Shown here piece after piece: positions 16,977-61,700 of a stretch of DNA of 64,000 bases (positions within the stretch are counted from its first letter, which is position 1; every line of letters begins with the position of its first letter). The position numbers and the translations under genes are program-made. The notes below the pieces were generated by a model that did no database searches, was not told where the DNA came from, and was given only the letters and a program-made list of their open reading frames with translations. Source of the DNA: Eutreptiella sp. 'Long Island Sound 2002' (taxonomy: Eukaryota > Protista > Euglenida); the NCBI GenBank assembly GCA_964036045.1, contig OZ038378.1, positions 193,192,001 through 193,256,000 on the forward strand. Reading direction: 5' to 3'.

Positions 16977-18236
16977 ATGGATCATTCTGTGATGCACTCT
17001 TCCTATGTCGCCGCTGGGTTCCCAACTCGAGTTGCTAACATCCAATCGAAGGTGCTAGTGCTTGTAGGATTAGGGTTTGGCTTCATCATTTGTGCAAGTG
17101 CCGTTGCAACTCCATCTCTCCACTTTGCACGGGTTGGTGGATTGCAGCGTTCCAACCCTTGGGCATCAACAAGGATCAACACCCCGAAGTCGGAAAAGTT
17201 GCTACACGAGTTGCAAGGCACTACAAGGAGCGGCGCAAATCCCCGATCGGCGGCAACCTTAGTCCCAAAACTACACGTTTCGGGGACTCCCGAAATGGCG
17301 GGAAATGATGCCCACTCCTTGTTTCATATTGTTGGATTGTCTTGTTTGGCGGTGGCATCCACCCTAGGAGCAATATGGAGCAGGCAGTGGAGGATGGCAA
17401 CCGTCAGCGGCGAGCAGTCTTTCGCACCGAACGTGGGCACCCCCATCGTCGACAGAGCTACGAAAGTGTTGCTATTGAAAGACCACGCAAACGGGGAAGA
17501 CCCCTACGAAGTGGAGCTCCAAAAGAAGGGATACGAACCGATATTCATTCCCGTACTCCGCTTCGAGATTCTCCATCCCGAGACACTTCCCACGTCCCTT
17601 TCTCAATACATGGCAAATCTGGCGGCGATGGTCATCACGAGCTCGCGGTCCTGCGAGAGTCTCAAGTGGGCGCTCTCGCAGGAGAGCGTCCAGGGCGTGA
17701 GGGAGGCTTTGCTGGAGAATTTTCCCGTTTTTGGTGTCGGGCCTAAAACCTGCAAAGCCCTCCGGGAATTGGGCTTCAAGAACGTGCAAGGGGATCACAC
17801 CGGCTCTGCGGCCGCCCTTGGGCCAGTCATCATCGAGTTCTGCCAGCAGTGCAGCCCCTCCACGGTCCTGTTCCTCAGGGGCGACAAAGCCCTCGACATC
17901 CTGCCGAATTTGTTCGCAGAAGCGGCGCTGCCATTTGAGTCCGTGGTCACGTACAACACCATCGAAGGGGCGTCCGAGGGCGCCCTGAAGCGGCTGGAGA
18001 AGGCGGGGCCGTTCTCCGCCAGCGATTGGGTGTGCCTGTTCAGTCCGTCCGGGGTCCGGTCACTGGCCAGTCTCCGGCAGGCGGTCCCCGGGTTCGCGGA
18101 GCTGAAAAAGTTCTCCATTGGGAAAACAACGTCGGGGGCCATTGAGAAGGAGCTGAATGAGACGGCGGAGGCGGTGGCGGCCTGCCCCACCGCGGTGTGC
18201 ATGGTTGAGGCGATTGCACTGCATGACGAAGCGTAG
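16977..18236 (+). CDS. hemD: Plastid-targeted uroporphyrinogen-III synthase (HemD/UROS), intronless, 419 aa
   Basis: Mature domain has VLLLK...DPYEVELQKKGYEPIFIPVL, VITSSRS, VFGVGPKT...LRELGF, VLFLRG, VTYNT, LFSPSGVRSL and SIGKTT, which are HemD motifs. The N-terminal ~140 aa has two hydrophobic segments flanking an S/T/R-rich stretch and ends in RQWRMATVSGE, matching the euglenophyte class I plastid presequence. Confidence 0.92.
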   Translation: MDHSVMHSSYVAAGFPTRVANIQSKVLVLVGLGFGFIICASAVATPSLHFARVGGLQRSNPWASTRINTPKSEKLLHELQGTTRSGANPRSAATLVPKLHVSGTPEMAGNDAHSLFHIVGLSCLAVASTLGAIWSRQWRMATVSGEQSFAPNVGTPIVDRATKVLLLKDHANGEDPYEVELQKKGYEPIFIPVLRFEILHPETLPTSLSQYMANLAAMVITSSRSCESLKWALSQESVQGVREALLENFPVFGVGPKTCKALRELGFKNVQGDHTGSAAALGPVIIEFCQQCSPSTVLFLRGDKALDILPNLFAEAALPFESVVTYNTIEGASEGALKRLEKAGPFSASDWVCLFSPSGVRSLASLRQAVPGFAELKKFSIGKTTSGAIEKELNETAEAVAACPTAVCMVEAIALHDEA

Positions 18237-41684: not shown

Positions 41685-42926
41685 GTGAACAACATCACGG
41701 TTGCGAATGCCATTATGAATGAGTGGCCTGCCCTTAATCTACCCCGGGAAAAGGTGCTTCTGGTGTTGGTGGACAATGCAGGTTACTGTGCACTTGCATT
41801 TACTGCACATTTGCAAGCTTTCTTCCCCAATGCCAAACTCCGTACATGTTGGGGTCACACTGGTAACCGCTTTGGGGCTGCCATGCTAGAACACCCCGAT
41901 ATGGCAGAGTTGCGGGAGTATCTGAAACTCATGCGTTCTCTTGTGCATGGTGCAAACATGGTGTCTCGGCGGCAGCGATACATTGCTGCAGTGGGTGCGG
42001 TGTGCCCTGATTACACAGACACCCGCTGGGACTCTGCGACTTCTGCGGCCGAGCATCATGCAAAGCACTTGCGTTTAGAGGTTGCGTGGATATCCACTGA
42101 GGTTGACCGGAGTTCTCAGGGCAAGGAACGTCCCGAGGCCAAAAAGAACACAGTTCTTCAGCAGGTCTCTGCTCTGGTTAGCAAGCACCGCCTAGTTTTG
42201 CATCTGCAACTCACGTTTTTTTCCGAGTTTGGAAAACCAATATATGAATTTATCACCCACTTGCAGGTGGACATTGTTCCCAAAGGGAACTCAGGTGGAC
42301 AACGTACCCCCATTGGCCATCGCCTGTTCATTAGGGTGATAGAGCTTGAGAGCAAACTGCAAAATTGGGCCCAAGATGTTGGGCTGGTCCCTGGTGTCAA
42401 ACCATTGCTTGATATGATTCGAAACCCTGCATTGCGAGAGGCACATGTGAACAGTTTGAAACGTGTTGCTCAAAAGGTTCTTGCTGTGATCGCCAAATAC
42501 AAGGACAAGCAATTGCCTTTTTTTGATGAGCTGCGGGTGCTAGACCCCAGACAAAGGTCAGCTATGTCCCAGGACCTCAGTTCTTACAACCATCTGTTTG
42601 ATGCCAGCACCCAGCAGCTGTTGCAACGCTCTGGACAGTGGACCATCTATTGGAAACTGAATATTGTTGCTGGTGCTGATTTTAGTTTGTTGTCTTGGTG
42701 GGAGAATGCCTCCCTTTATATGGGTATGCCTGATTTGGCTGACCGTGCAATCACTGCTTTAACTTTGCCAGTGACCACCACTGTTGCAGAGGGGTCATTC
42801 CGTGTTATGAAGGGGCTCCTGACAGCTGACCGCCGGTGCATGTCTCATGACACGCAAATTGGATACCTTTTGGCCATGGTGAATGGGGATGTCAACCACC
42901 GCATCCCACAATGGGCCTTTGTGTAG
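41685..42926 (+). CDS. hAT-family transposase, C-terminal 413 aa (N-terminus lost; in-frame stop just upstream)
   Basis: KVLLVLVDNAGY (D), RTCWGH (CxxH), DTRWDS (RW), and dimerisation-domain WW...PDLADRAITALTLPVTTTVAEGSF...RR (E). Confidence 0.85.
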   Translation: MNNITVANAIMNEWPALNLPREKVLLVLVDNAGYCALAFTAHLQAFFPNAKLRTCWGHTGNRFGAAMLEHPDMAELREYLKLMRSLVHGANMVSRRQRYIAAVGAVCPDYTDTRWDSATSAAEHHAKHLRLEVAWISTEVDRSSQGKERPEAKKNTVLQQVSALVSKHRLVLHLQLTFFSEFGKPIYEFITHLQVDIVPKGNSGGQRTPIGHRLFIRVIELESKLQNWAQDVGLVPGVKPLLDMIRNPALREAHVNSLKRVAQKVLAVIAKYKDKQLPFFDELRVLDPRQRSAMSQDLSSYNHLFDASTQQLLQRSGQWTIYWKLNIVAGADFSLLSWWENASLYMGMPDLADRAITALTLPVTTTVAEGSFRVMKGLLTADRRCMSHDTQIGYLLAMVNGDVNHRIPQWAFV

Positions 42927-43329: not shown

Positions 43330-44786
43330 TCTGTGGTAATATGTGGGTTACTGGTGGTATAGGGTCTGAACATATTTTGGTGATTGGGGTCACCAGGCAG
43401 TGCCCTGCTGAGGGTTTTTACCAAAAAAGGTCCGCCCCGCACAGTGGCCCGTACAGTGGAAAATTTTTGCCCCGAACAGGGGGCGGGTTGATTGTATGAC
43501 TGTTGGCAATCAAATTCTTTCCCATTTTTTCGCCCAACCAATGGGACGATCACATGCATCGCAGCGCATTGATTTTTCTATTGCCACGCCTCCGGCCATC
43601 CCGCTTGAATCTGCCATAGCCACGGCTTTTCTTTCTTCTATAAGCTCGCAACTCCTTGATGACCCAGTCACAACAGAGTTGAGCAACCTCAAATTTTCTT
43701 GCGAATCTACCGCTGACACAGCCTCAACCATCTCATGGGCGGTCAGCTCGGATGGTTTCAGCACTGACGTCAGCAACTCAAGTTTGCCTTAGTCTGCTGT
43801 CAGTCTGCTGTCACCAGGCGACCAGTCTTTTGGTACTGAGGGTCAGGAGCACACTGCCCTCAAGTGTCCCACTTTTCATATCTATTTTGGTTTTCTGTGT
43901 GCCTGATTGCTTGTCTAGCCATCTCACAGGCTAAAGGAGTGCCGAGATAGTTAGAGGAGTCTTCGGACGCTAGGTTCTGCACTGTTTTGTCCATGCTTGA
44001 CACGTACAGCCCTTGGTTCTGCCGATACGCAGTCCTCCACTGCACATAGTTGGATGAGGATGGAATACACGCAACATTTTTGGACTAACGGCTGGAAGTG
44101 CCTATGGCGGGGGCATTCAGTCAATGTGAACCGACAATTGCTTTCTCCTGAATGTGCACAATGGGAAGGGGTTTTGGGGGGAAGACAGTGTTTGCCGAAA
44201 CATTGCAAAATCTTTGCCGAAACAGGGGCTTGGTTGTGCATAGCTGGTTACCTATGTCATGGTTTTCCATTGGGCCCAATTGGTCAGACATTGTAGGCTA
44301 CCCCGGAGCTCCGGGTGCAAAATGCCACCCATGAACACCATGAGCTCCCGAGAGCGCACACAGGGACCAAAACACAATTCATGACTATCATCATCATTGG
44401 AGGCGTCTTAGTCCTAGAACTCACTGGTAATAACCCTGTTTCACCCATTTCTACTTTTTTGCACATATTTTTTTCCTATTTCCGCCACATCCACTCTTTT
44501 TCTGGGTTTATTGATGTAGGGTGATACACTTTGAGGGTGCCTGCTGCAGGCCATCATATTTCCCTCCTCATTTGTCCAGCCCACTTTCTCTATGGATCTC
44601 AGTATTGGGGATAGGGTGTTTTATACCCGCTTTAATGACCTGCGACCTCCTGACACGGTGGTTGGGACGGCTGAAGGCGGACTCCTCCACTTGGAATACT
44701 ACCAAGATGGGTTGAGAGTGGTGAATTGGCAATGCAAGATGGAGTCCACCTCTATCTATTTTTTTTCGAATCATTCTTTTTTCAAA

Positions 44787-45716
44787 ATGAATTGGGGCTT
44801 CACACAAGCTGAACTCAACACATGCCTGAAGGTCCTGGAAGCGATTTGCGATGATCCTGCGCTACTGGTCGAGCCCAAAATAAGTGCCACCGGCATCGAA
44901 GAACTCATAAATTGTGCAGCTCTTTCTAACTCTCCTCCGAAGGCCAAGCAGGATTTCCGACTCAGTGGCAAGGCACCCATTCTAGGTAGTGACTTGTCAC
45001 CAGGCAAATACGGCTCTTCTGCAATGAATGGTCCTGCCAGCTCTAGTTCCAAGTACAGTGCCAGTGGCTCTGCGAACTCTGCCCCCAAATACGGTGCTGC
45101 TGGTGGTGGTGGTGCCTATGGTAGTGGTGGTGGTGGTGGCGCTGGTTATGCGAACTCTGCCCCTAAATACAGTGGTGCTGGTGGTGGTGGTCGCGGTGCA
45201 AAGTACGGCAGTATTTCTAGCACAACGCCTGCTAAGTATGGCTCCATGAACGGGACAAGTGCGGGCCCGAAATACGGCTCCACCGCGAACGCTTTTGGGT
45301 CTCCTGCACCGCCCGGCGGAGCAAAGTACGGAGGAAGTGGTGGCGGAGGAGGCACTGCAAAATATGGTGCCATGCCTGCTCCCGCCTCGTCATACCAACG
45401 ACCAAGACCGTTCACACCTAACCCCGCGGTGTGGAGCCTCCGCCAACATGTATGGTTACCGAGTCAGAGGCCCTCAAAAGGACGGAGGGTGACAAGACAC
45501 CCACAACTAACCGTGGATAGGTGCACGCCACTGACTGATGCATGGTGGAAATGCCTGCTGAATGAACGGGGAGAATTGGAGAAGTTAGATGATGCAAGGG
45601 TCCTGGTTTCCCGGTTGTGGGGATTGAGATTCACGGGTGGAGCAATTGTGCAGGATGGTGCAGCGTTGGAGGCGAGCCGCGAGACTCGTGGACACGCAAC
45701 ACTTAGAAGCTCGTAG
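44787..45716 (+). CDS. Intronless retrocopy ORF; Gly/Ser/Ala-rich protein with repeated KYG/KYS motifs, function unknown; the C-terminal part may be read-through into foreign sequence
   Basis: ATG lies 18 nt after the SL remnant. About nine (G/S/P/A)KY(G/S) motifs follow a helical N-terminus (FTQAELNTCLKVLEAICDDP). Confidence 0.6.
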   Translation: MNWGFTQAELNTCLKVLEAICDDPALLVEPKISATGIEELINCAALSNSPPKAKQDFRLSGKAPILGSDLSPGKYGSSAMNGPASSSSKYSASGSANSAPKYGAAGGGGAYGSGGGGGAGYANSAPKYSGAGGGGRGAKYGSISSTTPAKYGSMNGTSAGPKYGSTANAFGSPAPPGGAKYGGSGGGGGTAKYGAMPAPASSYQRPRPFTPNPAVWSLRQHVWLPSQRPSKGRRVTRHPQLTVDRCTPLTDAWWKCLLNERGELEKLDDARVLVSRLWGLRFTGGAIVQDGAALEASRETRGHATLRSS

Positions 45717-45759
45717 GGTGGGGTGAAGAAGTAGGAAAACACATGTGTGCGCAAAAGGT

Positions 45760-46500
45760 GCAGCTATGGCGCGATGCTCAAGCAGCCATGAAGAGAAAAC
45801 GACAAAAACGACCATGCCATTACGTTTAAGCACAGGAGTGTCGGTGGGGCGACCGAGGAATGGGGGGCACAAGATAGAGGGACGAGCAGGCACAGGCCAC
45901 CGCCGTGGCGAGCGGTCCCCAGCCTCCGGACCTTTAGTGGAAATCACAGGGACTAGCCCCGGGAAGAATAGTTGCCTTTCTTCTGCATGTCATGTGAGTT
46001 GGGAAGAGGTGATGAAGAGGGTGCCAATCCCCCGGCCTTGGAGTTTGTTGCACTAGTCCCACGTTAAAATGATGGCAGATCTGTTGGACCTGCGGATTCC
46101 AAGGGACACTTGAAAGTCTAAGGCCCAGGGCATGAAAGAATGGCGCGACGCGCAGAAAGCCATGAAGGGTATACGACAAATACGACTGTCCTTTAGGTTA
46201 AGCACAGGAGGGTTGGTGGAGCTACCGCCGAATGGAGAGCGGGAGATAGAGGGACGAGCAGGCACACAACACCGCCTTGGCTAGCAGTCCCCAGCCTCCG
46301 GACGCTCAGAGGAAAACCAAGGACGAAGTCTGGAACGAATAGTCGTCTTTCTTCTGCATGCGATGTGAGTTAGGAAGAGGTGATGAAGAGGGTGCTGATC
46401 CCCTTGGTCTTGGAGTTTGTTGCTTCAATCTCACGTGGAAAGATGGTGGCTGGCTAATTGGACCTGGGGATTCCAAGTGATGCCTGAATGTCAGTGACCA
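45760..46500. repeat. Diverged tandem duplication, period about 370 bp; a third partial copy near 48060-48140
   Basis: ATGGCGCGA...GCCATGAAG, TTAAGCACAGGAG, GATAGAGGGACGAGCAGGCACA and GGAAGAGGTGATGAAGAGGGTGC each occur twice. Confidence 0.75.
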
Positions 46501-48749
46501 CAGGGCGCGTGAGAGAGGAACAACATAAGCTAGAGGTGAGAGGGGAGAAGGGCGAGGGGCCGTTCCCATGACAACGGAGGGTGGTTGAGCGAAAATCCTC
46601 TGAGATCTGTTCGATTAAGTGAGAATGTCTAGCCATGAGAGCAATGCATCGGCGGCGGGGGACGGCACGGGCACCCCGGACACGACAGAAAGCCCCGCCT
46701 CATGAGAGAACACCCAGGCTTCCACCCCACCGCCAAAACGCCAAAGGACGGACCGAGCACGTTATCAGCCAAGGGCGGCTGGACGATCCAGGTCTCACGA
46801 CCATGAGATCCGCAGTGGGCGATCCAGGACCAGAACATCGAGTCGACATGCGCCGATACACGTGCACATACATATACAGTAGCCGCCGGCGCCAGCTGCG
46901 GGCGGCAGGCAGCAGGGGCAAGCGGTCCCCCCGGGGTAGGGCACAGCCCGCACCCATCATTGCAAACGACTCGAGAAGCGCCACAAAATGAAGAAGAAGG
47001 AGCAAGAGGCACAACAGGAAAGACGAGACCACGAGGCCGCCCCGCAGGTGACAACAGCGAAGACACCAGAGGAGGTGGAAGAGACAGGGCCCGTGGGCGT
47101 GAAGGGCTTCTCAAGATTTGCTCCTGCGCAATTGTACACCCTGAGCCATCACCTGGAAAGAGCCAAGCATGCGGCGGTATAGCGGGGCCCCGAGACGCTC
47201 GCTGTGCTAGTTGTGCGGCCCACGTATGCAGCAATGGCGTTCCAACCGCCCATTCCCCGGGGTTACGAAGATGGATGGCTCCAGATGGTGGCAGTGGGCC
47301 TTGGAAGAGCCCTGGGATTTAGTGAGCCCCCTGTGCCCATGGCCTGCAAGAACCCGCAGGAAGTGCATCTCTCTTACAGATTTTGGAGGTTGGAGGCATC
47401 TACCGCTGTGCTTGAGCTGGGTGTCTCCAACAATCAAAAGTGGGGACCACCGCAGTACTTTTGGATGAAGGGAAGGTATTGGATAATCCGACATGCAGTG
47501 AAGCACCTCACTCCCAAGGCGTTGGCTGAAGCATTACGGCAAGACGAAGGAAGGGGACAACCGATCACCACCCCGCGAGCGAGTCACAATCAACCGGCAC
47601 AAAGGCCGGAGCATGTGGAGGCACCACCTTCCTACGACAAGGTCATGGGGACCAGGCGACCCAGTGGGGACTCCAAGTCAGCCCTTTACATGGATGAATG
47701 GCTGAGTTGGGGGAAAGGAGCAGCCTTCGGGCAAGAAAAGGGCCTTGCAACGTCGAGAGTCATCCCCAAAAATGAGGTAAGGGGAAGCAAGGAGATCCTG
47801 CTGCACCCCGAGTGGGCAAAGGGCACGCGAGTCAAGTCCACAGCCTGCACCAATACCAACCAGCTCCGGCACGGCTTCCCTTGCCGCCTCTGCCTCCACC
47901 GCCGTACACACCAAGAAGGTTCTCACCGCAAGACCAAGGACAAAAGGGAACCCCTCACCATGGCAAGGGAGGCCGATGGGGCCGCTAAAGGATTGATGGA
48001 ACGTGCAGGTGCGAGCAGGCATAGGACACCCCCTTGACGTGTGTCTTGAGCCTCCGAACCCAAGAGGAACAATACAGAGACCGGGGAACGAGTAGGCACA
48101 GGGCACCGCCTCAGTGAGTTGCCCCTTGCCTCCGGGCCTAGGACAAGAGGTATGGGGCTACAGCTGATTTGGGGGATGGACCGAAAAGAAGTGATCATAT
48201 AGGGAAATGAGACGTGGGTTGGCGACTGTTGTCACTGAGGGTGCCCTTGGTACGCGTTTGAAACCCAATGTTGTTCCCGACTGGAATATTCCCAATGGGA
48301 ACAATTCCCGCCGGAACAATCTCGTTGGGAACACCACTGGAACAAGTGTCGCAGGCCAGATAACCAGATCCATCACCATGAGTTTCCAAGTTCGTAAATG
48401 ATGTTTTTTGTCTCTTTCTTGCATGTATAACGCGTCCAAGGCTTGTCTTTCCCATCGGGGCCATGTTGACCTTGTGAGCCGTTGGTGCCACCTTCCACTA
48501 GGTGTACACATTTCGAACTTTTCGTATCCATTTGCAAGCCTGCTGTTTCTTGTAGTTCAGACGCAGCGTTGTATGACTTTTCAACGTTGGCGTCCCCATT
48601 CTCCCGTTTGATTTGTGCATTGTGGCCATGCCTAGGGTCCCATTTTGGTATTTGTTCCTTGCCTGAATGCTCGGTGGGTCTACGGGCATCTTCCCCTAGA
48701 GGTATGCATTGCCAAATTTCGCTTCGTAGTTCATTGTCGTAGCTTCATC

Positions 48750-49517
48750 ATGCCTAGATCGCAAACCCGCGTTGCGCAACTAACCACCCACCTCGTCCAT
48801 TTGGCTAGTGCTGTTAGCCTCCGGGACGGGAATCTTGTTGGGGAGCTCATAGCGGAATGGGCCATCTCCTCTCCACACGCCCGCCGCCAATTTGTGGTGG
48901 CCGTGCGCTTGGCCCAACCAAGCTGTGTACGCGAGATACAGCAGGGGGCAATCGCCAAGTACGCCTCCGAGGTGCTCCCCCCCGATGAGTGTTGCGAGCT
49001 CATCCTCAACCTGCGTGCGCCCAAATCCGCTTGGCGCACGCTCTCGGAAGTGTACACCCTCCGGGGGCTGAAGTACACCGCGACCACGGGCCTTCCATTC
49101 GCCCGTCCGATTTGCCCTGAGAGGGCTTTCCAGCAGCGCTGGCAAGATCTACTGGCCCCCTTGGAGCTGGCCCCCGCGGTGAGCACTTCGGATCCCAAGG
49201 CCACGGGCATCAGCTGGCCGTGGGCATCATGGCTGCGCTACATTGCTAGCCAACCCCCGTTGTGCCGCATGATCGATTGGTCGTTCCCCCTGACTTTCAT
49301 TGTCAGGGGGGATGGCTACCCCTGCGCAGGCGGGGAGTGGTCCCAATTGTCTGTGTCCATCGCCAACATGGGCCTTTGGGGACGAATTTCCGCCTGCGTG
49401 TGGGTCATCGGCCTCGCAATCTGCGGGGACAAAGCGATGGCGACCCTAGCAACCCTTTGGGAAGACAATATTAAGGTGTGCCGCGCACACCGTGTTGTTC
49501 CGGCGACGTTCCGATAA
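48750..49517 (+). pseudogene. Truncated CMC/Transib-like transposase containing only the first catalytic Asp region
   Basis: PLTFIVRGDGYPC...SQLSVSIANMG...WVIGLAICG resembles the LxLxxDG core of CACTA-type transposases; the ORF ends in the repeat array. Confidence 0.55.
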
Positions 49518-49550
49518 CTTGTTCCGGCGACGTTCCGGCGACGTTCATTT

Positions 49551-49830
49551 GTGCCCCATGCCCATAAAGGGGCTAGGAATCTTTGTTGTCCAGGGGAAGG
49601 GGAAAACCCAAGAACCCCCAGTGATTATTTGTGCCCCATGCCCATAAAGGGGCTAGGAATCTTTGTTGTCCAGGGGAAGGGGAAAACCCAAGAACCCCCA
49701 GTGATTGTTCGTGCCCCATGCCCATAAAGGGGCTAGGACTCTTTGTTGTCCAGGGGAAGGGGAAAACCCAAGAACCCCCAGTGATTGTTCGTGCCCCATG
49801 CCCATAAAGGGGCTAGGATTCTTTGTAGTG
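49551..49830. repeat. 80-bp tandem repeat, about 3.5 copies
   Basis: GTGCCCCATGCCCATAAAGGGGCTAGG... starts at 49551, 49631, 49711 and 49791. Confidence 0.95.
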
Positions 49831-51249
49831 GATGTCCCCCCCCCCCCACGGGGCCGTAGTGCACGCAGTGCGCCCTGTGCGCGCGCGGAACTGTGCCTAT
49901 TTTCCACTGTTCCGGCGGCGTTCCAACAACCTGTTCCGGCGACGTTCTGGCGACGTTCCAGCGGCCAGTGGAACGTCGCCAGAACGTCGCCGGAACAGGT
50001 TGTTGGAACGTCGCCGGAACAAGGTGTCCGGGTAGGGTTGGCCTCTCTCCGGCATCCTTGTCTGCAGGACGGGATGACCGAGACCGAGGCCCTGGGGGCA
50101 GCACTGGCTGCACCACCCCCGCCAGCCCCACTGGGGGCACAGGGGGCCACGCGCTCCGAGCCACGCAGCAGCTCTGCGCTGGCTTCGCCAGCCCCTCCCC
50201 CACCTCAGGGCGCTCCCAAACATCCTCCGTGGGCAACCCCCGCTCACCGGCCATCGGAGGCGCCACGGCCTGCCCCACAAGGGGCCGCGCCAGTCGCGCC
50301 TCTCCAAGCGCATCGCCCCCAGTTGCCCGAGCCCTCGACTGGGAGCTCAATGAGTAACGGGGGGGGGGTTCGGGAGCACGCCGTGGTTCTGGGGGAGCTG
50401 CAAGAGGCGAGGGGCAATGTTGAAAGCCTCCGCCGCTGGGTGAAAAAATGGTCTGCGAAATTGGCGGAGTGCCGGCGGCGTGGGGACATCACCGGGGGGG
50501 GGCACGCGGGCGAGAGGGTTTTGGAGGGGAACCGGCGGGTAAGGGAGGCGCAGAAGGCGGTGGAGGTGCTTGAAAGGGAGTTGCAGGGCATGGGTGGGGA
50601 GGTGCAGGTGAAACAGGAAGGGGGTGTCAACGACGATGACATTGTGGAGCTGGGTGAGGTGGTGGTGGATGAGAAGGATGAAGAGCGGAGGGCTAACCCG
50701 GGGGTTAAGAGAGAGGAAGAAGAGGGGGGGGGGGGGGGATGGGGATGGGGAGGGGGATGGGGATGGGGAGGGGGAGGGGGATGACGCCGGCGGCGTCTTG
50801 CGCATTACGGATTGGATGCGCAACCGACTTGGCTCATCCCTGGCAGCAAAAGCTGCCAATTTTCCCTGGACAAGGGAGATGGTAGGCCCCAACCCCCCCC
50901 CCCCTGGACGCCTGTGTCCTACGAGCCCCCCACCCCACCATTTACACGCTCCGTTGGCTGCTGCAGCGCTTCCTGCACAAGCAACCGCACCGCAAGGAGC
51001 AGCGTGATTGCCGCTGGCGCCGGGAGGAGGGGTCCGCGCCAGGGGGGGTCCCGGTGTCCTGGGTGACCGGGCCGGGGACAGGGCGCACGGCACCCCTCCC
51101 CAACGACTGGCTCCCCAGCAAGGCGCAGGGGGGCAAATTTCTAACCGCGGGCTCTGTCAGCGCGGGGAGCGGCCATGGCACCTATTGGACTATTAGGCAG
51201 ACCTATTGGAACGTCGCTGGAACACTCATCCTGGCTATCCTCCATGTAG

Positions 51250-52511
51250 GTGGAGGACATCCAGGTCAACCCTTCGGACCCGCGCGCCGTTCGGGTGATC
51301 CTTCGTTGGCCAGGAAGCGATCCCCGGCCCATCTATTTGGGTACGTTGCTTCAGCAGTTGCACTTGCAGCCCGTCGCCGCGCTCGAGTTCCTCACGGCCA
51401 TGATGGACTACGTGGCAGCCCGCGGCAGCGTTCTCGCGACGCGCATCGAGGGGTGGGGCAGCATTGGCGACATGTCCCCAGCGCCGCCGCACTGCCAACA
51501 AGTGGCCGCAGAGGCCCCCGCCCCGCCCGCGTGTGCACCGCCCGTGCAACCCCAACCCCCGAACCCCCACCCAGCCCCCCAAACAGCACCCAAACCCAAA
51601 CCCAAACCCCAACGCCCCCCCAAGCGGGAACCCAAGAGCGCCCCCAAACCAGCCCCCCAAAAAAGGAAGAGGCTCCCGGGGGAGTCCTCCAGCGAGGAGT
51701 CGTCCAGCGACTCCTCAACGGACTCCTCCTCGGGGTCCACCACCGACTCCTCGGCGTTCGAGGAGCCCCAGCCCCGCCCCCCGGCCAAGGAGCCCGCCAA
51801 ACCCCCTCGCAAGGCCCCCAAGAGAGCCGCGCCCCCCCAACCCAAGGCCCAGCCCCCCCAACCCCAACCCAAGGCCAAGCCAAAGGCAAGAGGGGGGGGG
51901 GGTGCAAATACAAAGCGGGGGAGCAAGTGTATGTAGTTTTTCGGGACAATGGGCAGTGGGGGATCGAGCAGGGCAAAGAGGCCCTTGCCGCGGGTGGCCC
52001 CCCCGGGGTTGCGGAGACGTGGATCGCCTTCCCCAAAGACCCCGAACTCTTCGCCATCCCGAGAGCGTCGGTTTGGAAAACCAAGACGCAGGCGAAGAAG
52101 TTCCTCGCCAAGATGATGGCGGCCGAGGAGGAGGACAAGGAGGACGACGCGGACGCGGACGAGGAGGGGGACGAGAGCAACGACGGGGACGGGGACGGGG
52201 GAGACGAAGGGGATGGACCGGGGGCAGGTTTGGGTGCTACCGGGGCTAACCGGGATGGGGGCGTCGGGGAAGAGGTCGAAGGGGTGGAGGGGGAAAGGAT
52301 GGAGGTCGAAGGGGTGGAGGGTGAAGGGGTGGTGGGAGAAGGGGTGGAGGGTGAAGGGGTGGAGGGTGAAGGGGTGGTGGGTGAAGGGGTGGAGGGTGAA
52401 GGGGTGGTGGGTGAAGGGGTGGTGGTCGGTGAGGGGGATGGGGGGGATAGTGGGGCGGGTGACAAGAGTTCGGGGGCGCCCGCCGGGCCCCCGACCACGC
52501 AGGACTTTTAG
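51250..52511 (+). pseudogene. Cargo or accessory ORF of the CACTA-like element: Pro/Lys-rich linker, Tudor/PWWP-like barrel, acidic EGEGV repeats; frameshift at a poly-G near 51900
   Basis: MEDIQVNPSDPRAVRVILRW...PKPKP...SSEESSS in one frame joins CKYKAGEQVYVVFRDNGQWGIEQG...TWIAFP...EEEDKEDD...(VEGEGV)n in another. Confidence 0.45.
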
Positions 52512-53804
52512 GTGAGAACAAGAGACTAACCCGATGGGCCCCCGGGGGCACCCTACACAACAATGTATGTTACCATTTTACCCTTCCTTGTGCTTTGCTC
52601 TTGTTGTAGAGTGCTTGTTCCGGCGACGTTCCAATAACTTGTTCTAGCGGTGTTCCAATGGTGTTCTAACAAAAACTGTTTTTGAAAACAAGTTTTTTTC
52701 ACGTGGCAACGCGCCGGGCAACAAATATGAGCATACCAGCGGGGACCCCCAAGGCTAGCAAACAACATATTTTGCCACCATGTACGGGTAGGCTTGGTTG
52801 GGGGGTAAATAAATTTTGAACTTTTTTTGTTCCGGCCAGATAGCCTAGAACATTGGAACAATTTGGCCGGAACAACATTGGGTTTCAAACGCGCACCAAG
52901 GGTGAATACGGATCAGCAGACAATGAAGAATGATTTTTCAAAAAGGTTCTCCCTTAGCAGAACCCGGGCAAGCTAAGCCCACAACGTCTCTTTGGGACGT
53001 GTGGCCCATAAGGCATACCCTAATGGTTGCATGTACCACTACTGGGAATCCGTGTGACCGCTTTATTAAACGCCCGGGACAAACCAGCGCGTACTACCGT
53101 TACGGACCGCGGAATTGCCATGTTTCTCCTCCCCACTAGGGCCATCGTATGGACTCGCGGAGTTACCAAAAAAAAAACCGAAAAGAACAATGCAAAATGG
53201 AGTCCATCTCCTTTGCCAGCCCAAGTTCAGACTCGCCACCTGACTGCTCTCTATCTCCGCCGCCCAACACACAGTCAAGTTCCCCCCCAAAGGCCCCTGG
53301 TCCTTCACCATTGCCACAAGAACCGGGAAGGTCCCCCTCAAGGTCCCCTCTAGTCCAGTTTGGGTCGCCTAATTCTAAGGGTGTTTCCAATGGGCGTGTC
53401 TAGGGGCTCTTCGGGGGGAACATAGTCTAAAAGTAGCGCGTAGTGCGCGCGTAGTGCGCGCACAGTGCAAGGATTCCCCCTCGGGATTGTAAGTGGGCAA
53501 ACATCAATGTCCCTAAACTATGACACAAAGACACATTTTCTTGGAACATCACAAGGAAGAGAAGTTGGTCAAGGCCCAATGTGTAGACTTGGTGGTGTCA
53601 CCCAGCCTCGGCTCACAATGCCGTGTGCTGACCACATGGGGGTTCTGTGCACCGAGATCTCTGCACGCCAGTTCGTGCGTGCACCTAGATCTCTGCACGC
53701 TAGTTCGTGCGGAACTAGACTTCTGTGGGCGGGTGGGTCGAGGGGCAACCCGTCCCAAAAAAGCAAAAAGACTGGAAGGAGGGGAAAGGAGGGTCAGGTT
53801 AGAA

Positions 53805-54262: not shown

Positions 54263-54680
54263 CTAGGCGGCTGAGTTCCCCGCGCAACTGTGCGCTGCGC
54301 TAACCCCCCCCCCCCCCACCCGCCCCTCCCATTGTGCTGACGCACTATGGAACCATGGCATCACTGTCATTTTGAGGGGTCCTACATATTGGTGTTTGAC
54401 CCGACTCCAGGCTTTCCTACCGCGCTCCACCTTAACGCGTGCCAGTGAGATCTTCTGGAAGTCATTCACCGTGTTGAGGCCTGCAGGGTTGAAGTGTGTG
54501 GGCACCCTGCAGATGCCGATGTTGACGTTCCAACATTGGATCGAAAAAAGGCTGTGCACTACGGCCATCCGACACCATAAACAAACCATTGCTTCTCAAA
54601 AGGACACGCGTGATCAACAACAACAACGAACGAGATGAGCCCAAAGCACACAAAACATAGAACACACCGTCTAAGTGCAA
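54263..54680 (-). pseudogene. RNase H remnant of a YR/DIRS-type retroelement
   Basis: Frameshifted LGSSRSLLLLITRVLL and IGICRVPTHFNPAG resemble the GRSxS and VPSxxNPAD motifs. Confidence 0.4.
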
Positions 54681-55230: not shown

Positions 55231-55307
<77 letters not shown>

Positions 55308-55325
55308 GTTGTTGTTGTTGTTGTT
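55221..55325. repeat. (TTA)n/(TTG)n microsatellite
   Basis: Directly visible. Confidence 0.97.
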
Positions 55326-55588
55326 ATTTCCTTAGCCTTCCAGTTTGTTTTGTGCTCTGGTAGCACACCGGGATGCCTTTGGGCGTGACAGCTCTCACCC
55401 CATTTCCTGGTATTAGATATAGCTAGCAGGTCCTTGCTGGTGTACTGTCCACTACCACACCGTCTTGTAGGACAATCGTAGCACTGGGCAGCTCTGATCC
55501 TTGATTTTGAGACATTTCTCGAGTGCCTTCTAACGAGCAAGTTGCGGCGGCTCATCATGGCTTGAACCCCCCCCCCCCCAAAAAAAGA

Positions 55589-55630
55589 TTTTCTGAGGGT
55601 CTATTTTTTTCGAGTGTCTATTTTTTTTCG
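55589..55630 (+). other. Two tandem genomic copies of the euglenid spliced leader
   Basis: TTTTCTGAGGGTCTATTTTTTTCG followed by AGTGTCTATTTTTTTTCG, compared with the Euglena [28 protein letters not shown]. The second copy matches the last 18 nt exactly. Neither is followed by a GT donor. Confidence 0.92.
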
Positions 55631-55637
55631 GCACCTC

Positions 55638-56474
55638 ATGGATCATGCATCACAAGTGGACGCTCGGATTGTGTCCAACTCACTAACTACACCAACACTC
55701 CGGCAGCCGCTCCCGGACAACGCCGGGCCGCTGGCGGACTCTCCCAAGAGCATCCCACGAAGCATCGACAGGAGATGGCGGATGATACCAGGGGACGGCA
55801 GGATCGTCGGCAAGGCAAACGCCAAGGCCGACAACCGGCCTCACGCTGATCTACTGCCGCAGAAGAGTTCTGACAAAATTCCCAATTTTATGCTGCAGTT
55901 TGGATACCCATTTGCACGGGACCCCAAAAACCCTCGAAGTGGGAACGGAGATCCTGAGCCCAATTCAGCTTTCAAGTTTGGTGACCAAGACGTGCAGCGC
56001 AATGCAGGAGACAACATACCTAATGAGCTAGAAGTGCAACGCAATGCAGGAGGCAACGTTCCTAATGAGCTGGAGGTGCAGCGCACTGCAGGAGGCAGCA
56101 TTCCTAATGAGCAAGAAGTGCAGCGCCATGCAGGAGGCAACATTCCTAATGAGCTGGAAGTGCAGCACAATGCAGGAGGCAACGTTCCTAATGAGCTGGA
56201 AGTGCGGCGCAATGCAGGAGGCGACATTCTTAATGAGCTGGAAGTGCAGCACAATGCAAGAGGCAACATTTCTAATGAGCTGGCAACAAGCCCCGCGCCC
56301 TGTCGCGGAGGGTCTCACTGGTGTTATGCCACCGGTGAGAACACGGACCTATTCCCCTCCAAGCGCCCCATCTTTGGATGTGTGAAGGATGGGTTTGACG
56401 TCATTATGAAGATCAGTAACACCCCAACCGACTGCCGCGACAGCCCGCAGGATCCGGGGGGAGGATTCAAATGA
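55638..56474 (+). CDS. Intronless retrocopy ORF (278 aa) with seven 14-aa repeats (VQRNAGGNVPNELE), function unknown
   Basis: ATG lies 7 nt after the second SL copy. 42-bp units span 55992-56285 with no frame disruption. Confidence 0.7.
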   Translation: MDHASQVDARIVSNSLTTPTLRQPLPDNAGPLADSPKSIPRSIDRRWRMIPGDGRIVGKANAKADNRPHADLLPQKSSDKIPNFMLQFGYPFARDPKNPRSGNGDPEPNSAFKFGDQDVQRNAGDNIPNELEVQRNAGGNVPNELEVQRTAGGSIPNEQEVQRHAGGNIPNELEVQHNAGGNVPNELEVRRNAGGDILNELEVQHNARGNISNELATSPAPCRGGSHWCYATGENTDLFPSKRPIFGCVKDGFDVIMKISNTPTDCRDSPQDPGGGFK

Positions 56475-57531
56475 TCAATATTGAGAGGATTAATTGATTG
56501 TCTTGGACATGCGCGTAGTTGAGCCCCGTTGCTCGGTTGCATCTGGACACCTGTCAGGAGCAGTGGCCGAATGCGGCTCCAGTGGAAATGTCACCGGCAC
56601 ATCAGGAGTTAGATGATCAGTTTTGAGCCTGCTTCTTTTCAACATGCCGAGCCGACCAGGCAGTGACCAGTATATATATATTTTACATTTTGTTTGATTA
56701 CATGCAGCCGAACTTGATGCTTCAGGGCCCCTCCGGCCCTGACCCCACTACCCGCGGTTTCTGTAAGTGTTGGCAATGACCTGTCAGCCTTCGCTCTCTC
56801 TGAGTGTCGCTGACGTTTGGGCAGGGGCGTAAAGCTTCCTATGGCCCGCTGTTGGATTCCCCAAGACCGAATGAGTGTCGGGGAGCACTGTAGAGCCTCT
56901 GCAACGCTTTTAAGCTTCACTTGTGGGTCTCCAGCCGGGGGAACTCCGAAGGCATGATATTACATTATGTCAAGGTGCAATGATATCGAAGTTGAGATCT
57001 TCATGTTGAGGATCGCTTGAGGTAGCATATTTTTAGGTGCTATAGTATTGGTGTTTCGTAAGCAGAGCAGACCTGTGAGCAGGTACACAAAGGAACATTC
57101 CAGTCGTGATTAATGCACAATACGAGGAACTGATTGAACTTTGCGTGGCAATGACCGGTCGCCTGTGACACGGGGGCGTTCGGTAGCCAAGTATCCGTTG
57201 CTTCATGGCCCAAAAAAAAGAAGGGTAGAAGGGTAGTTCCGGTCAGCGTGTTGTTCCGTGTTTGAGCCTGGGTTAGCTTTCATGTCACCACACATTGTCC
57301 ATTCCTTCCTCCTTCCATAAAGGCGCTGTGAAACTTGTCGCAAAGTGGATTTGCACTGATTAAAGTCTTGTACCATGTCTTGGTGTTTGTGTGGGGCTTC
57401 CCCATAGCATCATAGTAGTTGCTATATACCATAGAACCTTTTGTGTCCTTGTTGTGGCGGTGGGGCCTGCCCAGCCTCTACTCATGAGAGAGCACTTAGG
57501 AGCGATGATCATGTGGATATTGGCCAGGAAA

Positions 57532-58411
57532 CTAAAGTTTCGCAAGATCCCCGCTTAGAGCTTTTCTGTATTTTAAGCCCCCCCCCCCCCTCGGTGCTCT
57601 ACAATGTCTAAGGCGATGCACGAGGACAATGGTCAACCATAGGCCGCGGGCCCAAATGCAGTGAACGAGGACCTCTAGAAATTCCGCGATTGGGTTATTG
57701 GATTGTTCAAAATGGTCAAACGGTAGGCCAAATACGGGGAGTTGAGCCCCCAATGGCAGCTGGAGGAGGAATAATACCTCGTTGAAATGGGGGTGGATGG
57801 CGACGACCCAAAGCAGTTCGCCGGGGTAGCTGGTGTGGAGCACTTGGACCGAGGAAAGCTGCTCACAACGATGCGCGTCTAGGAGGTACGCAAACACTTG
57901 CGCGCCAATGTCAAGGGCCATTGGTGTGGGCCATCGCCTCTGAGGCCGGGCAGCTTGCCCACGCGATTTTTCCTGACAGGCGGTGCACGGTGCGCCGCTA
58001 ATACCCGCACGTCGTCAACGAAACCCATAAAGCAATCATACCTGACGTATATTCCGGGGAGGATGAGATTGACCACGCCATGCCGCTCAGGTCCTGGCCC
58101 ATCCATTGTATATGGGTCTGGGCTTCCATGATAGACTTTGGGCTGATTCTCCACCTGTCCTCCACAAGTAGGTTCCGCAAGCGCTGCATGGTGGTCTCCA
58201 CCTCCTGCGGGTCTAGCGCTGAAATGAGGATGTCATCGAAGTACACTGTCACCTCCCATCTTGTGGGTCCCATCCACGCCAATGTCTTGGAGAGGAGCTC
58301 CGTCGCCATAATGGGATTGTACGTCCATCCGAGGCAGGCTGTGGAAGCTGTAGATATATATGTATATGTATGTAAGCTTTGCGAACCGCACCTTTGAATG
58401 AACATGCGCAC
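57532..58411 (-). pseudogene. RT/RNase H fragment of a second YR (DIRS/VIPER-type) retroelement
   Basis: LGWTYNPIMATELL, VTVYFDDILI, RWRISPKSIME...IQWMG; followed by a frameshifted RNase H-like stretch. Confidence 0.75.
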
Positions 58412-58726: not shown

Positions 58727-61700
58727 ATGGCCCTCTCGCAACATGGCAGCCTGCCCGACCCGGCCGCCGACACCCACGCCCACTTCCTGGCCCTCCCCCG
58801 CCGCCCGCACACGATGGAGGAGGCCACATACACGGGGGGCTTGCTGGTGGGGGAGGTGATGGAGTGGGCAAAGGGTTTGGACCCCTTCCCCACCCTCATC
58901 CATATTGACATGAGGGAACCCGAGCGTGCGGGTGCTCTTCGCAAGAAGGGGTGGGCCACAGACCTGTGGCAACAACTGCAGCTGGCCCTCCCCAAGAATT
59001 TCCGTGTTACTTAACGCACCCAAGTACTTTGCATGTTATAAGATTTACACACTTAGGAATTAGCTTGCTTGTAGTGAAGCTTGTACATTGCTGTTTGTTG
59101 TGGCAATTTTTGTTATGTGACGCGGGTGCACAAGCAAGATGCGGAGGCCAAGTGGCAAGAATTCGCTACTCCATGTGCCGCCCTCCGCCACGTCAAAGTC
59201 AAAGGTGCCCCCTCAACTCTGCAGCAAGTGCACATTGAGCGCGCCGCAAACAATTCCAGGCCCCGCAATGGCTTTGAGTTCTCATTGAAGCCCCCTAACG
59301 CCGCCTTGCCACATCAACCCCCCAAGTCCCAAGCCGCCTCCCCTCCCACTACGACACAATCCATCAGCAGCTTTGTTGAAGTTTTGAGTTCGTCGTATTG
59401 CAGTAGTTGCCGCGGCAAACTATGTGGGGTGACGAGCTCGTGCTCCCAATGCAAACGGGGTGTCCATGAGCATTGCTTTGTCACGGTGGAGGGTGAGGGG
59501 CACCGTTGGTGTTTTGCGTGTGCCTGTATAGGTTGTGAAAAGCTTTTGGGTAACACTGATATCCAACAGTGCAAGCAATGCAAATGCTATGTGCATGTTG
59601 AATGTGCACTTGATGGGTTGTGTCTCCAGTGTGCTTAACCCATATGCCCGCCTTGCCCTCCCGCTACCAAAACTCGTGCATTCCATACTTCATGGCAATC
59701 CGGGCGCCCCTAACGGGTGCACACACAGTCCCAGGATGTACCAATGCCTATTCCATTGAGCCGGAGTACCCGCCGATTGTTGGCTCCCACAGGACTTGTG
59801 CATGCAGCTATACCCTCACTTACTGCCAATGCACAAGAACAAGCAACTTGGCTTTGGCGAAGCATGCAGAACCACCAGATGGCGCCTGGTATGACAACTG
59901 GGTGAAAAAAAATTATGGGGTGGACCCGCTGCATGCTGACCATTCCATAAATTGCACAGCTGTGGCCGTGTTACATTTGCCAGCCCTACCACCATTTCCG
60001 GGTCATGTCTCACTACTTGATGCCGTTCGGACAATTGGGGCACGTGTTGATGCTTAACAACTTCGTCATGCGGATCTGTTTCGGCGGGTTTATGCTCTTC
60101 CTGACACGATTCAGCGTACTTTTGTCAGATTCCCAATGGACATTGTGCGGCAGAATGTGCTATCTCTCCGTTGGCAACCAATGATGCTGTCTCAACTACG
60201 GCGTGGAACCAAACTGGACCACTTGAAACTGCTAAATACAATACGGCATGTGCAGCAGGCAACTCGTCATGATTTACCACTGTGTGTGGATATGAAGATT
60301 CACTATGAGCTCTTGAAATTCCTGTATGGGTGGAGTTACACATCCTGGAACTTCCAGTTGCACTGGTCAAGCCTCCCCCTCATCTATGGAGTTTGGCACC
60401 CGTACACGCATATGATCACCATGCTTTACCGCAACTTTATGCCCATTATCTGTCTGATTGAGAGAGTACCCAGCGATTTCAAGGAAGGGGATGCGGTACC
60501 AACAAAGGTTAAGCTGCTTCATATGGAGAAGACAATACTGGCGCTTTGTCTTAATGCTGGCACTTTTCTACCAAGAGTTCAGGCCAAACTTGATGCATTC
60601 GCCGTTGCGGCGCAGAATGGACCATTGAACGACATGCAGTCTAAAAGCAAGGAGCTACTTTTGGGGTTGAAGGTGTTGTTGAAGGAGTATTGCCCTGCTG
60701 CATTTAGGATTGGTGTCCTTGTGAGAGACTGCAATTGGGTTGGTAGAGATCCGGGAAGTGGGAAGAATGCCTTGGCAGTGCTGGAGTCCTGTTTGTTGGT
60801 TATGCTTTCTTTGGTGGGGGATCAATGGGAGAATGTGGAGTACATCAAGACATTAGTTGGTGCTCTGGTCACATGGCAGCGTTGGCACTCTCGAACGCCC
60901 GGTTGTATTCACAGTGAGGAATATGGGGAGGCTATATTGAGCAGGTTGTGTGCACAGTGCCGGATATGGACTACCATCTGACATGACTACACCAACCTCA
61001 ATGGGAAACCATGGGGGCACAGTCACGAGCTGCAGCCCGTATGCATACCCTGGCTTCGCCGAAATCTGTATCTTACTTCGAACTTGGTCCACTGTGGCCC
61101 CTGGCACTTATGAACTGGCCTTTTTGATAAAAAAAAACGGATATGGACTACCATCACATCCCTGAGTGGCACTTCCGAAATTTTTGTAGCATTGTGTCAG
61201 ATCCTGACAGGGAGGAAGAACCTGCGGTTCTCACTGACAGAGAAGTGTGTGAAGCGGTATGGGTCCAATCTGAGGAAGTTTATTCTGAGTGTGTCTGTTG
61301 CATCCTTGCCCATTGTACAATGGAAGCCGCCACCCCTTCGGGTAGTAGAAGCAGTTGTGTTGCGTAGTGTAGATGACCTTCGGTTTCCTAGTACATTTGC
61401 AGCTGTTCCACCACGTAGCGTTCTTTTCAGTGTGTTCCACAAATATATTAGGACCTTTCTTCGTAAGAATCCCCCAAGCAATGACCTTCTTACGGTTCTA
61501 CAGCAAACAGTGCCCCCATCAACGATTGCCGGGCAACGGAATGTGGATATCCAGAGAGTGATGCAAATTACCCGCCTGCCGAAGCCCAAACCCAAACCCA
61601 AACCCAAACCAGGGAAACCGGTTGCACGACCAGGCGCCCCTCACCCCCCCCCCCCCCCCAGACACGGTGCACCCATCGCCAAACCTGCCGCAAGGAATCC

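Follow-up and report, generated by a model that had tools for sequence, protein, structure and literature searches.

Stacked spliced leaders in front of a probable cyclophilin-derived retroposon in the euglenid Eutreptiella

Relict spliced leaders (SLs) stacked in the genomic DNA of dinoflagellate retrogenes are a mark of mRNA recycling (Slamovits and Keeling 2008, as summarised in PMC6050394; at genome scale in PMC5585692), and such stacks provide a molecular counter of RNA-mediated gene duplication that, in the literature searched, has been described in dinoflagellates only. Here we report the same counter in a euglenid, Eutreptiella sp. 'Long Island Sound 2002' (GCA_964036045.1), whose genome holds more than 140 stacks among thousands of relics. 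The analysis started from a window of 64 kb, the whole stretch of DNA analysed (contig OZ038378.1, positions 193,192,001 to 193,256,000, plus strand; positions given below are window coordinates), in which two tandem SLs precede an open reading frame (ORF). We assign a probability of roughly 0.75 to the reading that this locus is one copy of a young, non-autonomous retroposon of the non-long terminal repeat (non-LTR) type, with about 330 copies, a body derived from a cyclophilin mRNA, a hairpin tail common to another family and a proposed cycle in which SLs are added.

As in the dinoflagellates, a genomic SL stands in front of an intronless coding sequence, tandem SLs are read as a count of retroposition rounds, and many stumps are cut at the AG of the leader (58 of 93 stacks in this genome). 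Unlike in the dinoflagellates, the lineage is euglenid and the carrier is a multi-copy mobile element instead of ordinary genes; a second junction, which retains the AG, accounts for ~30% of the stacks; target duplications lie beside C runs and there is no poly(A); and the case is known from the genome alone, whereas the dinoflagellate one was first seen in cDNAs. Two further systems are comparable. Long and short interspersed elements (LINEs and SINEs) can share a tail, the eel pair UnaL2/UnaSINE1 being an example, and SLACS and CZAR insert into SL-RNA genes. The concept of stringent LINE-SINE pairs with a common 3' tail has been reviewed (PMC3747384), and SLACS and CZAR are site-specific retrotransposons of trypanosomatids (named in PMC10161547). 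With the stringent pairs the present element shares its non-autonomous nature, the lack of a reverse transcriptase (RT), a hairpin-forming 3' tail of ~50 nt common to another family, target duplications and frequent 5' truncation, but its body comes from an ORF-bearing mRNA and not from a gene of the tRNA or 5S type transcribed by RNA polymerase III, its 5' end is a trans-spliced SL and not an internal promoter, and its partner LINE is only putative. With SLACS and CZAR it has in common that a euglenozoan retroelement is physically tied to SL sequence, but here the SL belongs to the RNA that was transposed, the flanks bear no relation to SL-RNA genes and the SL intron is absent behind the leader.

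A full-text literature search, covering mostly papers outside subscription journals, returned no description of SL relics in euglenids, and none are described in those parts of the Diplonema genome paper and of a paper citing the Euglena genome assembly that term searches reach. The present analysis contributes a family that is non-autonomous and of mRNA origin, a census of junctions across the genome, the AG-retaining class, a shared tail that is not poly(A) and a C-run insertion signature. Since the counter sits on a young mobile family, the order of steps can be read from it, and the family offers a tractable system for asking how a promoter-less retroelement renews its 5' end.

Two leaders and the element behind them

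The sequence-only reading of the window had described two tandem SLs before an ORF, GT behind neither of them, and an inner copy that is the more perfect one and keeps its AG; all of this was borne out, and the layout of the locus is as follows.

55567..55579, plus strand: C13 homopolymer immediately before the 5' target-site duplication, belonging to the insertion-site signature
55580..55588, plus strand: 5' target-site duplication AAAAAAAGA, a string that recurs with one extra A at 57212-57221
55588..55612, plus strand: outer, 5'-complete SL copy with three differences from the genome's SL (C2>T, T11>G, and T7 in place of T8)
55613..55630, plus strand: inner SL stump of 18 nt, AGTG...TTCG, an exact copy of SL positions 9-26 with the SL's AG kept
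55631..55637, plus strand: leader remnant G+CACCTC, sister copies having ACTTTCAA in place of the G
55638 (ATG)..56474 (stop), plus strand: ORF of 278 codons with an unrelated N-terminus, the cyclophilin motif IPNFMLQFG, a 14-residue repeat present seven times and a cyclophilin C-terminal segment
55878..56038, plus strand: homology to positions 624-784 of cyclophilin transcript L061, ~85% identity (G000:C1:193247878-193248038)
55992..56283, plus strand: seven tandem 42-bp units, amplified from a segment that is single in the cyclophilin mRNA (its positions 728-785)
56346..56607, plus strand: homology to positions 900-1153 of transcript L061, coding sequence end and 3' untranslated region (UTR), 79% identity (G000:C1:193248346-193248607)
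57154..57184, plus strand: hairpin of the 3' tail, also present in a second retroposon family, where two base pairs are changed in a compensatory way
57160..57211, plus strand: 3' tail of ~52 nt ending ...CATGG(CC)C, without poly(A), 86% identical to family B
57212..57221, plus strand: 3' target-site duplication AAAAAAAAGA, matching the 5' duplication

The outer copy is followed by AG and the inner one by GC, and the ATG lies 7 nt beyond the latter. The SL-RNA intron form GTATATACTCGCTCC stands behind neither leader, so that the locus is not an SL-RNA gene; the SL is placed directly upstream of coding sequence, without the SL-RNA intron. The two SL units differ from each other at 2 positions, and the inner 18-nt unit is an exact tandem repeat. 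The G that replaces ACTTTCAA in the remnant is a change private to the window copy, with a single match genome-wide, and the form of the majority is seen in contigs from public runs, as a loose end at 55632. One exact occurrence of the SL 15-mer was found in the window, where 0.1 would be expected at up to two mismatches, and the SL 19-mer has 6,146 hits genome-wide against 3 for the reversed control; the leader match at the locus is thus not due to chance.

The element spans 55588-57211 (~1.62 kb). In the 30 copies that were fetched, homology starts at the SL and stops at ...CATGG(CC), the flanks differ in every copy, and divergence from the consensus is 0.25-1.3%. The ORF together with the 430 nt downstream has at least 186 genomic matches, and the 40 that were scored are all 97-100% identical across 1,269 nt. 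The 3' tail is matched 327 times genome-wide and the ATG region at the 5' end 73 times; about three quarters of the copies are therefore 5'-truncated. An automatic search found direct duplications of 5-12 nt on both sides of 19 of the 30 copies, those of the remainder being short or all-C. A truncated copy in L042 has only 67 nt left, yet carries its own C16 run and an 8-nt duplication. Poly(A) is present in none of the copies, which end in ...CATGG(CC) followed by C runs. No RT is encoded in the element, which is thus non-autonomous. In non-LTR elements, target duplication combined with constant 3' ends and 5' truncation is the signature of target-primed reverse transcription. Two hallmarks of such elements, target-site duplications of variable sequence and frequent 5' truncation with constant 3' ends, were found in the family, and a third, a 3' tail of poly(A) or simple repeats, has no match in it. 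An Rfam scan of 55300-57500, with E values up to 1, returned no known ribozyme or small-RNA module.

A subfamily (L072:6029-6151) has a different 5' exon, SL + ATTTTATTTCGTCCATGGCTGAGC..., which meets the body at element position 65. Two runs contain this junction too, as a loose end at 55654, and the ATTTTATTTCGTCCATGGCTGAGC exon also occurs in the unrelated repeat-protein family of L030.

Public-run data were used as de Bruijn contigs throughout, and a contig was taken to bridge a junction when it reached 31 nt inside the element. By this rule none of the listed contigs bridges the 5' junction, which lies in C13 and A7, a gap that would suit an assembly artefact or cDNA contamination. At the 3' junction, contigs X1 record 8 and X4 record 32 run over 57185-57420 with zero differences and reach the unique flank (the downstream flank of the window copy is single-copy), although they extend only 27 nt inside the element, under the 31-nt rule, and come from two samples of a single study on which the assembly itself may have been built. 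An artefact is nevertheless very unlikely, because matching duplications are found in 30 differently flanked copies and a separate ENA assembly contains the same element architecture; contamination by cDNA, which would not yield target duplications, is equally hard to credit.

The ORF had been called intact, and its reading frame is indeed open over 278 codons, but the product is a partial cyclophilin interrupted by a repeat. Against Pfam PF00160 it matches profile positions 82-150 of 159 only, across the repeat and with an E value of 3e-6, and its alignment to PDB entries comprises the C-terminal 55 residues and the IPNFM motif. A complete cyclophilin domain of ~160 residues with the central catalytic strands is absent; the central catalytic segment of the parent is unrecognisable in the element and the repeat takes its place. 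A word search led to a complete cyclophilin of 336 residues (P0014) on transcript contigs that start with the 3' end of the SL. These SL-bearing contigs (L061-L063) are 100% identical to four tandem intronless copies in the genome (G000:C20:9127078-9140648), and L061 maps contiguously onto the C20 copies from just behind the SL; the expressed cyclophilin gene thus lacks introns, and its DNA contains no SL. The intron-containing parent for which the sequence-only reading had proposed a search thus gave way to a nearest expressed cyclophilin gene in four tandem copies, without introns. Over transcript positions 624-785 the element is 83-86% identical to this transcript, of which positions 728-785 are matched repeatedly and are the source of the array of seven 42-bp units. 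Overall, the element is only 79-86% identical to L061, and this over parts of it. By these identities the expressed cyclophilin is best taken as a relative and not as the direct source; the element goes back to an old copying event of a cyclophilin-family mRNA and was not retrocopied from the expressed gene recently.

An intact ORF, found in the window copy and in 27 of the 30 copies, is what a functional host gene recycled twice through mRNA and kept for its protein would have, and the shared substitutions, at a synonymous to non-synonymous ratio of 7:8, are slightly more synonymous than the private ones (38:87). Against this, the private substitutions are distributed 40/42/43 over the three codon positions and are equally dense in the ORF and the UTR of the 30 copies, and so look neutral, as expected of decay; copies of the family number in the hundreds, are dispersed, and show 5' truncations and target duplications; the catalytic core of the cyclophilin is replaced by the repeat; and transcriptomes show a separate, intact cyclophilin gene. 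A host gene is thus improbable, and we attribute the intact frames to the youth of the copies, selection on the protein not being the demonstrated cause. An exact-protein look-up of the window ORF returned no record. Of the initial idea of a gene recycled twice, what holds is a retroposed, intronless, SL-bearing copy with a target duplication, in a family that shows repeated rounds; what does not hold is the host gene, as the carrier is a mobile element of ~330 copies. Intact ORFs preceded by an SL in this genome can therefore be retroposon copies and not genes, which is a warning for annotation.

Leader stacks and the AG-retaining junction

The reference SL and its intron GTATATACTCGCTCC were taken from real SL-RNA genes of the same genome (L001-L007, L009); a 5S ribosomal RNA gene lies beside SL-RNA gene L001 and is the sole Rfam hit at the gathering threshold among seven SL-headed loci. 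The SL-RNA intron follows ~1,283 of the 6,146 SL matches, so that about four fifths of them are relics. The count of single versus stacked leaders that had been proposed at the outset gave 101 exact AG-cut and 40 exact AG-retaining stacks genome-wide, against 0 in the controls, and 9 and 16 of these, respectively, belong to the cyclophilin-derived family. The 93 stacks in which both T8 runs are perfect divide into 58 that are AG-cut, 28-29 that retain the AG and ~6-7 that contain a whole relic plus a few bases. In the family itself the following 5' states were found.

No SL: L044
SL remnant: L056
One SL, often 1-3 nt short at its 5' end: among the 30 copies
SL + TGTC... stump cut exactly after the SL's AG: L033, L034, L036, L058
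SL + AGTG... as in the window copy: 9 copies
Triple stacks: L040, L051, L052, L059

These states are scattered over the body haplotypes; single-SL copies L037 and L038, for instance, share private substitutions with the stacked copy L039. Three SL-RNA genes share the T7>C variant carried by the outer SL of L039, which is what one would expect of a leader that derives from a real SL RNA. More generally, SL-RNA gene variants have CCGAG or TGGAG for the exon's CTGAG (G000:C9:6016677, C19:69613, C2156:6820; C25:25592578 and others), and it is the CCGAG variant that recurs as the outer SL of L039. Because near-identical bodies carry 0, 1, 2 or 3 SLs, AG-cut stumps among them, repeated rounds of trans-splicing and reverse transcription in this family are well supported by the sequences.

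The inner stump of the window copy starts with AG and was not cut at the leader's internal AG. The stack had initially been taken as the mark of two cycles of trans-splicing; as its stump keeps the AG, the window copy is not the canonical product of re-splicing. The same AG-retaining junction has 42 occurrences in at least 17 downstream contexts genome-wide; an outcome that recurs in this way is no mere accident of the window locus. The caveat entered at the outset, a template switch or a local duplication, survives in so far as the AG is kept, but a one-off local duplication is excluded by these 42 occurrences. In addition, 6-7 of 11 AG-retaining copies (the window copy and 5-6 others) have two SL units that are not identical, which argues against recent duplication of DNA. 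The outer SL and the AG-retaining stump of the window copy may most simply be read as two successive SL additions, and we favour a second addition that would have used a non-canonical site located 2 nt before the AG.

A different origin of the stump would involve one round of trans-splicing only, with SL positions 9-26 copied twice, either by slip-back or template switching of the RT or by slippage of DNA. The 2-nt GA repeats formed by SL positions 8-9 and by position 26 with the first base of the body would provide the route, and double copying would explain why the stump keeps the AG and why the unit is an exact 18-nt tandem repeat. It also requires an A behind the stump, and A is the base found there in 37 of the 42 AG-retaining stacks. 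The first base after single SLs is, however, likewise A in ~9 of 14 contexts, so that the enrichment is not significant and the base after the stump does not discriminate between the two origins. Slippage should moreover spread the junctions, whereas two discrete types dominate the 93 stacks; the units differ in the window copy (at 2 positions) and in 5-6 others; and AG-cut stacks in the same family show true re-splicing. Double copying is on balance an unlikely origin, if the most serious of the alternatives.

The identical junction in many unrelated contexts could also be explained if a variant SL-RNA gene, with its exon doubled or extended by AG, donated a double SL in one step. A search for doubled-exon SL-RNA genes gave none at 0 mismatches, the 1-mismatch hits being the CCG and TGG point variants of CTG, and SL-RNA exons ending in CGAG gave 0 hits. 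Variant donors of both kinds were thus rejected on this assembly, and the one-step donation is highly improbable. The stacks would also form a natural record of the acceptor sites used by Euglena trans-splicing on a defined substrate, including the unexpected AG-retaining one.

Insertion sites, the 3' tail and a proposed cycle

In most of the 30 copies a run of 10-21 C lies directly upstream of the 5' duplication; the exceptions are L040, L047 and L060, with C2-C7 only, and L052, where an element's own C tail occupies this place. The duplication mostly starts with C, and 1-11 C follow the 3' end. The copy in L042 is inserted in a satellite of ~100 bp, the units of which carry C3-C7 followed by a string such as (A/T)GACGG, and which offered a set of natural empty sites for comparison. 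C3-C7 is found in ten unoccupied units, whereas the occupied one has C13 upstream and C9 downstream, with AGACGG duplicated. On this comparison the target appears to be a short C run, the upstream run being lengthened on insertion, and polymerase slippage during gap filling is one possibility for the lengthening. The 64 kb of the window contain 33 C/G homopolymers of at least 9 nt (9-16 nt; for example 54304-54317, 57578-57590 and 61644-61659), against 6 A runs and 0 T runs, which amounts to ~1 per 2 kb and is far beyond expectation at 55% GC.

The last ~52 nt of the element are 86% identical to the end of family B, a very abundant second retroposon that is variably 5'-truncated and has the tail ...CGCCTGTGACACGGGGGCG...CCTCATGGCCC, and contig depth in the last 60 nt is ~10x that of the body. 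By chance, 11 of the 30 loci have a copy of family B no more than 1.5 kb away (e.g. L038:1188-1285, L052:2850-2947(-), L057:1013-1110). Both tails can fold into one and the same hairpin, in which two pairs show compensatory changes; as two lineages only are compared and the folding z-score lacks significance, this is weak evidence for a conserved structure. By analogy with the tail-sharing LINE-SINE pairs (PMC3747384), the element may be mobilised in trans by a putative RT that recognises the tail. The first 1.5 kb of the other SL-headed families contain no RT domain.

Two RT sequences were considered and rejected. A weak fragment with a YFDD motif at 57998-58411(-), 0.8 kb downstream of the element, is on the opposite strand and outside it, and an RT ORF upstream of the L072 copy stops at a C run and looks like a separate element.

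In the cycle that we propose, a resident copy would be transcribed, probably via read-through, as no promoter is known, and the trans-splicing machinery of the host would join a capped SL to the RNA, with the acceptor located at the 5' end of the element or close to it, this being the origin of every added SL; in copies already headed by an SL relic, the acceptor would lie inside the relic or just upstream of it. An RT supplied in trans would then bind the 3' tail and prime on a nick in the short C/G run of the target, presumably using its G run. Incomplete cDNAs would be frequent and lead to 5' truncation, and integration would duplicate 5-12 nt, usually C-first, and leave a lengthened C run upstream. 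As every full-length round would add one SL, SLs would accumulate.

Several observations weigh against this reading. The stump of the window copy retains an AG that use of a canonical 3' splice site would remove, and the 5' junction of the locus is, as described above, unbridged. The hairpin compensations come from two lineages only, and the last 1.2 kb of family B contain neither an RT nor a long ORF, so that the partner was not identified there. A word search found no protein of the family that derives from a transcriptome. RNA-library contigs, which may be DNA in origin, extend over the body, leave the 5' end uncovered (none over 55540-55680) and show no poly(A) at 57211. Of two scans of metagenomes and metatranscriptomes for the stacked-SL pattern, the first was blank and the second gave eight unrelated, bacterial-looking chance matches, in a collection that may lack Euglena records, so that these scans say nothing on transcripts.

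A wider idea, which we regard as possible but rather doubtful, is that promoter-less retroposons of euglenids rely on SL trans-splicing for a new capped 5' end in each generation and prime on C/G runs, the lengthened run serving as the polypyrimidine tract for the next round of trans-splicing. If this were true, the insertion scar and the renewal of the 5' end would constitute one self-reinforcing system, the AG-retaining stump would be the trace of a non-canonical acceptor that precedes the AG by two bases, and both the thousands of genomic SL relics and the frequency of about one C/G homopolymer per 2 kb would be explained. The family is in any case a candidate explanation for part of the repeat load of this 2.3-Gb genome and for its abundant C/G homopolymers.

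Other features of the window and genome

An insertion of ~8.4 kb at 44730-53215 has a 5'-truncated SL at its head (TCTATTTTTTTTCG at 44755) and an A-rich tail. It is flanked on both sides by a duplication of ~23 nt (CAATGCAA.ATGGAGTCCA.CTC) and lacks a C run; its insertion signature is therefore unlike that of the cyclophilin-derived family. Elsewhere in the genome, L008 and L024 have hammerhead-like cores (CTGATGAG ... GAAA) 2-20 nt behind the end of an SL relic, without an Rfam hit at the gathering threshold, and L010 and L021 are SL-headed, intronless ORF copies with a C-type lectin domain (E value 6.5e-8), one intact with 434 amino acids and the other truncated. In the window, an intronless ORF of 419 codons at 16977-18236 contains a uroporphyrinogen-III synthase (HemD) domain (E value 1.8e-33) and has no SL in the 180 nt upstream, and an ORF with a hAT-family dimerisation domain is located at 41685-42926, outside the element.

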